Assembly: GCF_006345805.1 (NCBI RefSeq)
Contig: NC_043009.1
Span: forward strand, 34,906,001 to 34,970,000
Length of the DNA: 64,000 nt
Reading direction: 5' to 3'
Origin: Octopus sinensis
Taxonomy: Eukaryota
This document shows positions 1-32,719 of this stretch, piece by piece. The notes below the pieces were generated by a model that did no database searches, was not told the DNA's origin, and was given only the letters and a program-made list of their open reading frames with translations. The translations under genes were made by a program, and so were the position numbers. Numbering within the stretch: the first letter of the stretch is position 1; the number at the start of each line of letters is the position of its first letter.

Positions 1-108
1 CACAGGCTGAGAATCTGTGTTTGTTAAAGGTGACATTATAGAATTTTACACATAATTTCACTTCAGGTAGTTGAGGTAAGCCAATACATACAGGTGGAGG
101 ATTCTTCA
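1..108 (-). CDS. Gene A exon 4, truncated by window edge (VKNPPPVCIGLPQLPEVKLCVKFYNVTFNKHRFSAC...)
   Basis: Acceptor ttctatcttccAG at 109-110. NPPPxC motif; 18/36 aa identical to gene B exon 4. Confidence 0.9.
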
Positions 109-131
109 CTGGAAGATAGAAAAGAAGGATA

Positions 132-171
<40 letters not shown>

Positions 172-269
172 GAAATAATGATAATAATAATAATAATAAC
201 AAAAATGATAATAATAATGATTAAGTGGATGTGAGAGCCTTCCACAAAAAGAATACAAATGCTGCCATG

Positions 270-800
270 GCAGTGTGAATACAAATTGGCTTTTGTGCCA
301 TAAATACCAATATGAAGTAACAGAGAACTGGTATGAGCATGTACCAAGTAAAATTACACAGGAAGATGGAAAAGTAACGATACTCTGGAACTATGGTTTT
401 CAGATAGATTATGTAATCGAAAACTGTCGGCCAGATATTGTCATATTGAATAAGAGAGACAAATACTGTCAGAATGTTGTGAGTAAAGAGGTTGAAATAA
501 TCACCAAGTACTCAGAATTGAAAGTGGACATGGCAAGACTGAATGGAATACGAGAGGGTAATGTAAAAGTGATATCAGTGGTAATTGAAGTGTTGGGCTA
601 AATCCCATTGAAACCTCAAGACGTCTTAAGGTAACTGGAAATCTCATGCAAAATTGATGTTGTGCAAAAAGCAGCCATATTGGGCACAGTGCACATCTTA
701 AGGAAAGTATTATCAGTCTGAGGTCCTTGTTGTGACTTGTCAGATGACTAAAGATTCTGGTGCATGTTTACTTACACTGTGTAATGAAGGAATAATAATA
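270..800 (+). mobile_element. R4/Dong-like RLE non-LTR retrotransposon, 3' fragment in a (TAA)n tract
   Basis: WYEH..P..TILWN..FQID....RPDIVI and C-terminal VQKAAILGTVHILRKVLSV*. Flanked by (AAT)n at 130-219 and about 791-820. Confidence 0.8.
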
Positions 801-899
801 ATAATAACCATAATAATAATAGACAAAAAGAGTACGACGCAATTTGTAATAGATTGTTTATTTAATGGTTTGAATGATATTTCAACAGATCTTCAGGTT

Positions 900-3000
900 C
901 AAAATGTAAAATGAAAATAACTGCAGAAACACAGAAATTCAAAATATAAAGAAAGAAATCTTGCATTCCTATTTCAATAGAATAACATCATCAGTTTTTA
1001 ATTCCATATTTGGTAAAAGGAAAAAGAAGAAAGAAAAAAGAAAAAAAAGGAAAAGGAATATTTTGTCAAACAGTTTCGTGTAAATGTGATGAAATTCACC
1101 TATCATTTTATTAATTCCTCCAGGACATGACGCTAGTAATTCACAAATATATTTGCTCCCATGCATTTCAAGGACTGAAAAAGTTGTAGAGTGAATATTT
1201 TCTGAGAATGTGCACTTTTTGGTGTTCCGCAAAATTGCAATCGTTTCATGTAAAATGTTCTATCAAACTACTGCTGTTGTGTCTGAAGTTATACCTGTGC
1301 CCATGGAAACTTTTGTTAAATTGTTATGTTGTACAACCAACATAAATTATATTGTGTTTATAGCATTCTGTTGTGTACACTAAATGGAAATCTTTACAAG
1401 TCTATTTAAATCATAACATTTATGTTATGATTTGTGATGAAATTGACTTGGCTCATGTTGTTGCATAATGAACAGGGCTTACCTCTCTTGCAGCTGTTTG
1501 TCAAGGTACAGTATTCAGAAACTTCAATAGTAGGTTTTTTGCGGTCAGAGGTAGCGGTTAAAATTTCTTTTATATTTTTATTGCATCTAAAAGCTACAAT
1601 AAGCATCTGGGGGAATATATGTTTGAAACAAGGATATTTTCCTGCCAGATGCTGGTATCTTTCATGCAACACTTTTGAAATGCCAGTGAAATTTCAGTGT
1701 CAGCTAATCACTGATGGAAGTCTATCACAAATTTTACTTTGGTTGCTAAAATTATGCTTGTAAATTTGACTTTACTCTCTCTTTTACTTGTTTCAGTCAT
1801 TTGACTGCGGCCATGCTGGAGCACCACCTTTAGTCGAGCAAATCGACCCCGGGGCTTATTCTTTGTAAGCCCAGTACTTATTCTATCGGTCTCTTTTGCC
1901 AAACCGCTAAGTAACGGGGACGTAAACACACCATGTGGTTGGTTAGCAAGCTACTTACCACACAGCCACTCCTGCGCCTATCCTTGTAAATTTTAGCTAT
2001 GTCATTTGTGATTTCCTTTAATCATAAAATGTTGTACAAAAGCATTTGCAGGTTTCCCCCATAGCAGTACAAATCTGATTTATACTAAAAAATTGGGATT
2101 TTGGATTTGACCTAATTATATGATGTGGATGATTCGAGTGGCAGTGGAGGTAAAAGCAGGATAATGTGGGCTTGGAAAATAACTCTGTCTCCAGAAAACT
2201 TTTGTGTCCAAAAACTCAATATTAGTTTTTGAAAAACTAGATGTAAGCTTTCTATTGGACTTAAAGCCATAGTTTTTAGCATAACAATCACAGAAATACA
2301 AGAAGTTAACTGAACTGTCCTGTGATCCTCCTCAGATGTAAAATACATCTTCAATGAACCATAATCAGAATATTGGTTCATGACCAAGCAGGGATTTAAA
2401 TGTCATCATTAAGTGTGGTGATAAAAGTTTTGTCCAAATGTCATTGTGTTACATTGTAACACAAACTACAAAGAAAATTAGATGGAATACTTTTCTGTGA
2501 CCATTCTTTAAAGGCATTCATGCATGCTTCCACCCATTCATCATGGTCAATATCGGGGTAGAGTGAAGAAACATTGATAGTTACCAAAAAAACAGATTTC
2601 AACAGAACTTTGGTGTTCAGAAAAGTTGTTAATTGTAGACACAAAATCAAAAGTATCCCAAACATAGGAACGAGATCTTTTTGCTACAGAGAGTAGAGAG
2701 CTATTCTGAAATTTTGACTGTACAACATTCATATCCACCGCAAATTGAGTGCATTGGAGGACATTTTTCAAACATTTTGTATATTTTGGGGAGACCATAA
2801 AGTACAGATGTTTTTTGTTCTCACTGTAAAATCCTGGATTCAGTCTTATTTATGAAATTATTTTCCTCCATTTCCAGAATTATTTTGTCAAGTTCCTCTC
2901 ACTAATTCTTCATATAAAGTTTTGTCACTTAAAACTTTTTCGCAAGCTGAAACAGGAACACAGGATTACTTCATTTACATTTTAAATTTGTGTTTCTGCA
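900..3000 (-). mobile_element. Degenerate Penelope-like element (RT + GIY-YIG), probably Neptune-type
   Basis: LYGLPKIYK; LVTINVSSLYPDIDHDE; IEFLDTKV; VAFRCNKNIKEILT followed by CKRGKPCSLC. Many stops and frameshifts. Confidence 0.8.
1771..1972 (-). mobile_element. tRNA-derived SINE (family 1, internally deleted) inserted in the PLE
   Basis: Reverse complement of the head and tail of the SINE at 40764-41155. Confidence 0.8.
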
Positions 3001-3007
3001 GTTATTT

Positions 3008-30905: not shown

Positions 30906-30914
30906 ATACTTAGT

Positions 30915-31309
30915 GCAGGTGCGTGGCTTAGTGGTTCGGGTATTCGGCTCAAGATATTATGGTTTCAAATTCCTGGCGGCTCGTTGTGTTCTTGATACAA
31001 AACACTTTATTTCATGTTACTACTTCACACTGGTAGCCACTGAACCTTCTATGTTTTCTCTGCTTATTTCTGTCTTCCTATCTGTTGAAGAGCGTAGGGT
31101 CGAAATGCAAAAGACTTTCTCACTTCCCGAGCGTTAAACTAATACATTTGTTTGTTGCTTACGCACCCGTCTTCGTCTTTTGATTTGCTTTTTTTGGTAT
31201 ATTTCAACTATATATATGTTACAGCCCCAGGCCGACCAAAGCCTTGTGAGTGGATTTTGTACACGGAAACTGAAAGAAGACTGTCATATATATTTGTGTG
31301 TGTGTGTGT

Positions 31310-31340
<31 letters not shown>

Positions 31341-31570
31341 TGTGTGTGTTGTGTGTGTGTGTTTGTGCGTGTGTGTGTGTTTGTTTGTACCTCTACCATT
31401 GCTTGACAACCGATGTTTCTGTGTGTACCTTCCCATAACTTAGGGCTTTTGGGAAAAGATACTGATAGAATAAGTACTAGGTTTATAAAGAATGAACCCT
31501 GCGGTCGATTATTTCGACTAAAGGCGATGCTCTAGCATGGCTGCAGTCACATGAGTGAAACAAGTAAAGC
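30915..31570 (+). mobile_element. SINE family 1 with a foreign insert and expanded (TG)n
   Basis: ggccgaccaaagccttgtgagtggatt core and tail match 40764-41155. Confidence 0.65.
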
Positions 31571-31902
31571 AATTAATAAGAATTAATCACAAGCAGGGTA
31601 TCTGTGCTAGTAATTAATAAAAATAATAAAATATTAATTTATAAGGTATAAACAAATTGTGAACATTTATATATGCATATGTACACACACACACACATAC
31701 ACACACATACATACATACACACATACATATAAATATACACACACATACATATATACATGTATACACGCGCAGAAACTTACATACACATACATGCATATAT
31801 AGGTGTATACACACACATTCTTCGTACCCATCACCCCCGTAAATGGTAATTAATATAGATCCATATTCGTCAATTCATTGTTAATGACATTTTGAATTAG
31901 TC

Positions 31903-32068
31903 TGTCTACGCAATTGCGTTTCTAGAAAAGTATATCTATTCTTAACGGTTTTAATAAAGTGTTGATATGTAATAAAATGTTGATGCTTAAATGTACATTT
32001 AAACATCAAAATTTTATTATAACCGTTAAGAATAGATATACTTTTCTAGAAACGCTATTGCGTAGACA
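31903..32068. mobile_element. Foldback MITE with about 48-bp inverted arms and internal hairpin
   Basis: Arms gtctacgcaa(t/a)..cttaacggtt with one mismatch. Confidence 0.6.
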
Positions 32069-32655
32069 CTCTGTTCAATAGATATAGAATAGTGGTACTA
32101 CAATGCACCAATATTTACAGGAAATAGCAGTTGATAATATACGACGCATTATCGCAAAGTTTCACTGTATATACATATATTGGCAAAGATGTTTGCGGGC
32201 GGCGAACATAACAAATTTCATCCTACCTGTAAAAAGAACATTAAATAAATGTACAACACAAATGTGGATAATCTAGGACCTAGGTTTCGAACTTTCCAAA
32301 TTACGTCTGTTAAAGTAGATTTGATTAGTTCTACTTGGCTAGATTCACCTAGACAAAATTTTGAATGCTGTTACATACATACATACATATCATGCACTAA
32401 CTGTTACTTTCTCAGATGCAGCACGGAATTTTGTCAGTAAACAGGTCGCGGTCTCAAAGCGACGAAAATATTTTGACAAATTAAATATAAATGTTGAAGT
32501 GAATCTAACGGTTTTTGTGTGATTTTTTAAATGGCTTATAAACACCTTCCACACTGCAACTGCTTTCGTTCCAGCACACAATCTCGGTTCAGGTCACTTG
32601 CTATATATATATATATATATATATATGATACATAATATATTATAAAAGGACTAAC

Positions 32656-32719
32656 CTTGTGTTGGCAACAACACTATGCCCAAGGAACAAAGGAGTAAGA
32701 GGAAATCAAATCTTGCCAT
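32656..32719 (-). CDS. Gene B exon 1: signal peptide (MARFDFLLLLCSLGIVLLPTQ+G)
   Basis: ATG at 32719-32717, hydrophobic core, phase-1 donor ACACAAG|GTTAGT. Joins exon 2 to give V-S-A|N. Confidence 0.87.

Follow-up and report, generated by a model that had tools for sequence, protein, structure and literature searches.

The 64,000-nt stretch of Octopus sinensis DNA analysed here (the window; G000:C13:34906001-34970000 of a 2.72-Gb assembly) carries two paralogous genes on its minus strand, which we call gene B and gene A. Reading of the splice junctions, along with a tblastn search of the window with the gene B product, gives four coding exons for each gene. The genes lie head to tail, 7.2 kb apart, with gene B spanning 32719..22383 and gene A spanning 15162..1 plus a further 163 nt outside the window. 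They are very probably tandem paralogous O. sinensis genes for single-domain DUF4773 proteins, of about 19 to 20 kDa after removal of the signal peptide. Their exons, in window positions, are:

32656..32719, minus strand: gene B exon 1, coding part (64 nt), with the ATG, the hydrophobic core of the signal peptide and the donor GTTAGT, phase 1
27792..27965, minus strand: gene B exon 2 (174 nt), with the signal-peptide end VSA|N, the LWKS helix, C...WECC and the start of the DUF4773 domain
25758..25850, minus strand: gene B exon 3 (93 nt), C-A-KLSYL ... SVS
22383..22621, minus strand: gene B exon 4, coding part (239 nt, counting the TGA), with RNPP-xx-C, FSAC, the last four cysteines and the C-terminal tail
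15093..15162, minus strand: gene A exon 1, coding part (70 nt), with the ATG, the signal-peptide core and the donor GTTAGT, phase 1
8487..8654, minus strand: gene A exon 2 (168 nt), with VSA|N, LWKS and C...WECC
6342..6434, minus strand: gene A exon 3 (93 nt), C-I-KLSYL ... SVS
1..108, minus strand: gene A exon 4, KNPP...FSAC, as far as it falls within the window; the exon runs past the left edge

All six introns start with GT and end with AG behind a pyrimidine tract, and the cumulative exon lengths place all six in phase 1. Gene A exon 4 extends 163 nt beyond the left window edge; we took its missing 3' part from the flanking DNA, where the stop codon lies at G000:C13:34905837-34905839. Once spliced, gene B encodes 189 aa with 8 cysteines (Cys) after the predicted signal peptide, and the gene A model, completed with the flanking genome, encodes 200 aa. 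The two proteins are 44% identical (BLASTP expectation value, E = 2e-52).

An earlier note on this DNA had proposed eight minus-strand exons with GT-AG borders and phase-1 introns, and all eight lie exactly where it placed them. Its gene B junctions (32656/27965, 27792/25850 and 25758/22621) are exact, the resulting spliced model being RefSeq XP_029644425.1. The motifs that it listed (VSA|N, LWKS, WECC, C-x-KLSYL, SVS-x-[KR]NPP-xx-C and FSAC) are all present in both proteins, its size of 189 aa and count of 8 mature Cys for gene B were reproduced, and the 93-nt exon 3 that it saw in both genes recurs in all seven octopod genes that we compared. In short, a reading of raw DNA without tools gave two spliced gene models exactly. 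The note also described the pair as hidden. This holds for the open reading frame track, which is blind to spliced genes, but not for RefSeq and UniRef, where both genes are present.

Spliced gene B is identical, letter for letter, to XP_029644425.1 (LOC115218648 isoform X2, 189 aa), and spliced gene A is equally identical to a 200-aa protein in NCBI and UniRef (P0003). Gene A is probably LOC115218615, going by Argonauta proteins that are named after their best O. sinensis match. Exact identity to database proteins, together with the BLASTP match between A and B and the Pfam DUF4773 E value given below, indicates that the gene models are not due to chance. Both genes, the Pfam domain and the orthologues are already in RefSeq and UniRef, so the object is an ordinary one and already known. 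In the literature, we found three papers that mention DUF4773 and none that names PF15998, IPR031941, any of the LOC numbers or any of the accessions.

Isoform X1 of gene B (XP_036364195.1; P0001) has 190 aa, one more than X2; the added residue is a Glu that sits after the signal-peptide core and before V-S-A, outside the domain. No two-exon splice that would yield this Glu is possible in the window DNA. The sole fit is a 3-nt microexon, AG|AAG|GT, at 31046-31048 in gene B intron 1, but its acceptor is weak and purine-rich, and about 0.6 such matches are expected by chance in this 4.7-kb intron. The extra codon may be a model-building artefact or a polymorphic codon. At the same position O. 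bimaculoides carries one more codon, for Gln. CAI9731847.1, a 298-aa O. vulgaris model named “glycine receptor subunit alpha-2-like”, is chimeric: it fuses the N-terminus of a Cys-loop receptor, about 130 residues long, to gene B exons 2 to 4. The corresponding receptor-like exons in O. sinensis lie on the same strand, far upstream, at G000:C13:35008007-35129704, which is 38 to 160 kb to the right of the window end.

DUF4773 membership and predicted fold

The gene B product (isoform X1) scores 68.7 bits on the Pfam DUF4773 profile (PF15998; E 7.9e-19), where the Pfam cut-off is 27 bits, and it covers profile positions 2-114 of 118. This bears out the family assignment of the earlier note, which had named a HMMER comparison with Pfam as its check. 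Single exons are informative as well. Gene B exon 3 alone aligns to profile positions 27-56 and gene B exon 4 alone to positions 58-114 (25.1 bits), gene A exon 4 alone reaches 34.3 bits, and these single-exon matches fall in the correct order along the profile. The databases carry precomputed PF15998 matches for the proteins P0001 to P0004. When the genome was searched with the Pfam model, only the last exon of gene A was returned; because the genes match exon by exon, a genome search of this kind is unable to count family members.

An exhaustive HMMER search of 1.84 billion representative sequences found 383 representative relatives at E <= 1e-3. In an alignment of 85 sequences, the invariant columns are C67, C82, S111, C119, C131, C147 and C164, all of which are present in both window proteins, as are P115 and P116, which are at least 90% conserved. 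Both proteins also carry the S-x-[RK]-N-P-P-x-x-C motif and the C-terminal Cys framework that mark DUF4773. What they lack is the full canonical N-terminal cluster, C-x-C ... C-x-C-C, which brings the total to 10 Cys in canonical members; the window proteins have 8.

The two missing residues can be named. They correspond to positions 59 and 64 of P0001, where 89% of the family members in the alignment have Cys. Position 59 is thus the second Cys in “CxC”, and position 64 is the first in “CxCC”. Exactly two canonical Cys are thus gone, which is how the earlier note had read the start of the domain. Members of the octopod clade have F, T, L, P or M at position 59 and W, G or F at position 64. 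The same two Cys have been lost jointly in at least two other lineages of the alignment (P0037 with P0057, and P0119). Because these proteins pass the Pfam threshold region, the 8-Cys state reads as a variant inside DUF4773 and not as grounds for exclusion. The joint loss also argues that Cys 59 and 64 are bonded to each other in canonical members; in other words, one disulfide of the canonical domain can be predicted from the paired loss. More distant DUF4773-like exons with the canonical C-x-C...C-x-C-C cluster are found elsewhere in the genome (G000:C10:65260870-65284383, minus strand), and the octopus appears to keep the 10-Cys type beside the 8-Cys pair.

How old is the domain? Relatives with a named organism come from Cnidaria, Tardigrada, Echinodermata and Mollusca. 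They include the molluscs Aplysia, Haliotis and Solemya, the hydrozoans Clytia and Hydractinia, two tardigrades, and starfish, whose proteins have five or six DUF4773 repeats; some members couple the domain to Kunitz or low-density lipoprotein (LDL)-receptor class A modules. Because relatives span cnidarians to echinoderms, and because of these fusions, DUF4773 is, on this distribution, an old extracellular pan-metazoan domain and not mainly an arthropod one, as the earlier note had supposed. The gene structure offers a supporting feature that is outside Pfam's definition of the family. Octopus introns 2 and 3 share codon position and phase with introns of the Clytia hemisphaerica homologue: one precedes the Cys that follows “LNxT” and the other precedes “RNPP”, and both are in phase 1 in the two animals.

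We modelled the gene B product with AlphaFold2, using the 85-sequence alignment. The mean predicted local distance difference test score (pLDDT) is 81.7, with values above 90 over residues 60-170. Residues 56-168 form nine consecutive strands linked by hairpins, flanked by helices of lower confidence at 26-38, the “LWKS” segment, and at 171-184. Compared with the Protein Data Bank (PDB) by Foldseek, the model has no match at E <= 0.001, and a Foldseek search of BFVD gave no significant match. A profile of the family likewise found no PDB sequence, even at E <= 10, from which we conclude that no DUF4773 member has a solved structure.

One rival reading of this model is a small-ligand carrier, with the beta meander closing into a calycin- or lipocalin-like barrel that holds a hydrophobic or amine ligand in secretions. 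Every one of the top Foldseek matches in the PDB is an up-and-down barrel (the OlmO spirocyclase, nitrophorins 2, 4 and 7, biogenic-amine-binding protein and avidin), with E from 0.015 to 0.3 and a program probability of up to 0.92; the best of them, OlmO and the nitrophorins, have E 0.015-0.03. However, none reaches E <= 0.001, template modelling scores (TM-scores) are 0.24-0.31 with a root-mean-square deviation of 8-13 A, and the family profile matches no PDB sequence. The strand count is nine in the model but eight in lipocalins, and the model does not give the eight-strand barrel, superposable on known members, that would define a lipocalin or calycin. The Pfam scan returned no lipocalin family; lipocalin signature motifs were not looked for. 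We therefore regard a carrier as unlikely.

By inspection, both proteins have the architecture of secreted proteins, with a hydrophobic core followed by V-S-A, in keeping with the -3/-1 rule, and hydrophilic C-termini. The predicted mature products are:

Gene A: 20.0 kDa, isoelectric point (pI) 8.95, four N-glycosylation sequons, conserved in O. bimaculoides
Gene B: 19.1 kDa, pI 5.55, no N-glycosylation sequon

The B protein is without a sequon in both Octopus species, and in O. sinensis B is acidic and A is basic. These differences in charge and sequons suggest that the two paralogues have diverged in function.

The octopod array and its evolution

The tandem arrangement is not peculiar to O. 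sinensis. In O. bimaculoides, B is followed by A on one strand, 6.1 kb apart (LOC106881424, the B orthologue, and LOC106881425, the A orthologue; UniRef names both products DUF4773 domain-containing protein), and in Argonauta hians one B-like gene is followed by two A-like genes in the same arrangement. Across the seven genes of these three species, exon 3 is always 93 nt, and exon 2 is 174 nt in six, the exception being O. sinensis gene A (168 nt). In a maximum likelihood tree, with supports given as ultrafast bootstrap / Shimodaira-Hasegawa-like approximate likelihood ratio test (SH-aLRT), the nine octopod proteins group together at 100/99, the A clade has 94/95, and the two Argonauta A copies are sisters at 97/94. 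The tree implies that the A/B duplication predates the split between Octopus and Argonauta, and that A duplicated again in Argonauta. In octopods (Octopus and Argonauta) the tandem array is thus conserved, and its members form what is, on this tree, a derived 8-Cys subclade.

The earlier note had proposed a lineage-specific tandem family that might continue to the left of the window. Lineage specificity applies to the octopod subclade but not to the family as a whole, which is pan-metazoan. Nothing of the pair continues to the left of the window except the last part of gene A exon 4, and whole-genome searches of O. sinensis with either protein found no third copy there and no further close copy elsewhere. 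We identified no squid or cuttlefish members among the relatives, most of which lack an organism name.

Rates of substitution were estimated by the Nei-Gojobori method, with 95% confidence intervals (CI) from bootstrapping. Between O. sinensis and O. bimaculoides, the ratio of nonsynonymous to synonymous substitution (dN/dS) is 0.77 for B (dS 0.157, CI 0.46-1.38) and 0.67 for A (dS 0.109, CI 0.37-1.40). Over longer distances the ratio is 0.43-0.46 between the A and B paralogues, where dS is about 1 (saturated), and 0.24 between O. sinensis A and Argonauta A2, and all 8 Cys are retained across the octopod comparisons. These values make long-term purifying selection clear. The recent rate appears high, and on two species it cannot be told apart from neutrality.

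Could the pair simply be decaying? Non-functional duplicates, or artefacts of gene prediction, might keep their open frames by chance, and the short-range dN/dS values, which are not significantly below 1, would fit such a case, as would the lack of transcript evidence in the protein collection. Set against this, frames, splice sites and the 8 Cys are intact for both paralogues in O. sinensis, O. bimaculoides, O. vulgaris and Argonauta hians. The paralogues have reached saturating dS and yet keep a dN/dS of 0.43-0.46 (0.24 for A against Argonauta A2), and an 11-nt element upstream of the start codons, described below, is conserved. Decay or artefact is already largely refuted, and we consider it extremely improbable.

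The same rates could be read in the other direction, as the mark of lineage-specific salivary (venom), reproductive or other secreted effectors under positive selection. The pair is secreted, Cys-rich and tandemly duplicated, it belongs to an octopod-specific subclade, and the B-type tail has a conserved dibasic K-R or R-R. The overall dN/dS of 0.67-0.77 rises to 3.1 in a 30-codon stretch before the gene B domain. However, the dN/dS values come from small numbers and have CIs spanning 1, the family is widespread in non-venomous animals, and neither gene nor any DUF4773 entry appears in the supplements of an octopod venom-evolution study and an O. vulgaris posterior-salivary-gland study. Positive selection on venom or reproductive effectors seems to us a poor bet.

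Surroundings of the pair

Short sequences near the ends of the two genes are candidates for regulatory elements:

22350..22355, minus strand: AATAAA hexamer 27 nt past the gene B stop codon, a likely poly(A) signal
32750..32760, minus strand: 11-mer CGTCAGTAACA, 31-41 nt upstream of the gene B ATG, with one mismatch in O. bimaculoides gene B
15191..15201, minus strand: 11-mer CGTCAGTAACA, 29-39 nt upstream of the gene A ATG, identical in O. bimaculoides gene A
32768-32773: TATAAA near the gene B 11-mer

The 11-mer contains an initiator-like TCAGT and occurs just twice in the 64-kb window, with both strands counted. It is a candidate core-promoter or 5' untranslated region element, probably retained since the duplication.

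Two open frames with matches to Pfam RVT_1 (reverse transcriptase) are retroelement fragments, both on the minus strand: one (4238-4912, E 1.3e-14) lies in gene A intron 3 and the other (34965-36131, E 1.5e-25) is upstream of gene B, at a distance of 2.2 kb. The introns and flanks are filled with long microsatellites (15372-15555, 25231-25542, 25995-26336, 28480-28691 and 132-218), of the types (TGTA)n, (TA)n, (CATA)n, (ATAC)n and (AAT)n, and these give rise to long spurious open frames. One such frame, of 285 aa (15059-15916), sits beside gene A exon 1; it is read-through of a (TGTA)n microsatellite and no gene. A second, of 190 aa (22383-22955), is a spurious microsatellite frame that runs into the last exon of gene B. 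Four other frames of at least 155 aa (25841-26308, 37554-38309, 48114-48680 and 61584-62201) have no Pfam match. A scan of the whole window (1-64000) gave no Rfam match at or above the gathering score of its family, and no transfer RNA genes were found.

Possible role and comparison with known systems

The sequence features above can be assembled into a working model of how the proteins might act. The N-terminal hydrophobic signal peptide would direct each product to the endoplasmic reticulum (ER) and be cut after V-S-A. Residues ~56-168 are predicted, with high confidence, to fold into a nine-strand up-and-down antiparallel beta domain. Eight conserved Cys would clamp this domain with four disulfides; canonical members would have five, one pair having been lost in octopods. 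With neither a membrane anchor nor an ER-retention signal, the protein would be released. In the 85-sequence alignment the invariant positions are Cys and one Ser, the near-invariant ones are Cys, Gly, Pro and aromatics, and there is no catalytic-type set. Because no such set is conserved, the released protein may be a non-enzymatic binding module that acts outside the cell.

Where it might act is suggested by other members of the family. Another octopus DUF4773 protein, A0A0L8GLC6, occurs in the skin mucus of O. vulgaris and is lower in senescent animals (PMC11431876), and an oyster DUF4773 gene is among the top markers of macrophage-like haemocytes (PMC12064177). Because of these locations and the fast divergence between species, a defence or recognition factor at an epithelial, mucosal or haemolymph interface is a possible role for the pair, which we offer tentatively. 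Put more fully, the 8-Cys pair, a triplet in Argonauta, might be a fast-evolving extracellular effector at the interface between host and environment (mucus, saliva or haemolymph), built on a pan-metazoan disulfide-clamped beta meander that has no solved relative, in which A kept its sequons, B lost them and the targets of the two diverged. This fuller picture is speculative and on balance doubtful.

Several points weigh against this account of the pair as a whole. The role is argued by association, given that no DUF4773 member has a tested function. No transcript-derived contig in the protein collection carries the gene A or gene B product, and neither was found in the supplements of four octopus studies, of which two are skin-mucus proteomes, one deals with the posterior salivary gland and one with venom evolution. 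The proposed disulfide pairing follows from the paired loss of Cys and not from coordinates, and the signal-peptide cut site is placed by the -3/-1 rule only. Finally, the short-range dN/dS intervals include 1, so that selected fast evolution and weak constraint are not distinguishable.

We also noted exons that resemble the N-terminal peptide of A0A0L8GLC6 in the O. sinensis genome. There are nine, two on an unplaced scaffold (G000:C1319:35322-45894) and seven in a 210-kb array (G000:C13:23932377-24143299) that lies 11 Mb from the window. For three of the nine, no DUF4773 exon was found within 10 kb.

What is new here is modest: the 8-Cys octopod variant with the disulfide that it implies, the age of the tandem pair, introns shared with a cnidarian, and a domain with no solved structural relative. 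DUF4773 is an old secreted domain, into which any member that is clearly patterned in its expression would offer a reasonable way in. If the reading of the pair as interface effectors is true, the ligand of the octopod pair would supply the first function for the whole DUF4773 family.

The known systems closest to the pair are its own database entries and orthologues. The O. sinensis entries in RefSeq and UniRef (XP_029644425.1 and XP_036364195.1 of LOC115218648) have the same sequence as the window genes, apart from the extra Glu of isoform X1. The O. bimaculoides orthologues are ~78% (B) and ~85% (A) identical to the window genes, and the Argonauta hians relatives (GAB1601534.1 and GAB1601532.1) are 35-43% identical; both sets have the same four exons in the same tandem order. 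A0A0L8GLC6, which is of the 10-Cys type, was seen in mucus proteomics, whereas the window pair was not found there.

Lipocalins and calycins (nitrophorins, biogenic-amine-binding proteins and avidins) are, like the pair, small, secreted, disulfide-bonded, all-beta and up-and-down. In contrast to them, the pair has no sequence relation to these families, a TM-score of at most 0.31 and nine strands in its model, and it is not a member. The canonical 10-Cys DUF4773 proteins (Aplysia californica LOC101860221, Clytia hemisphaerica XP_066933208.1, the O. sinensis C10 exons and A0A0L8GLC6) share several features with the pair. In both, a signal peptide is followed by one domain of ~115 residues, and the S-x-[RK]-NPP-xx-C motif, the last six Cys and the Tyr, Gly and Phe positions are held in common. 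Unlike them, the octopod proteins have 8 Cys and not 10, an N-terminal “LWKS” helix segment found only in octopods, and a long stem branch.

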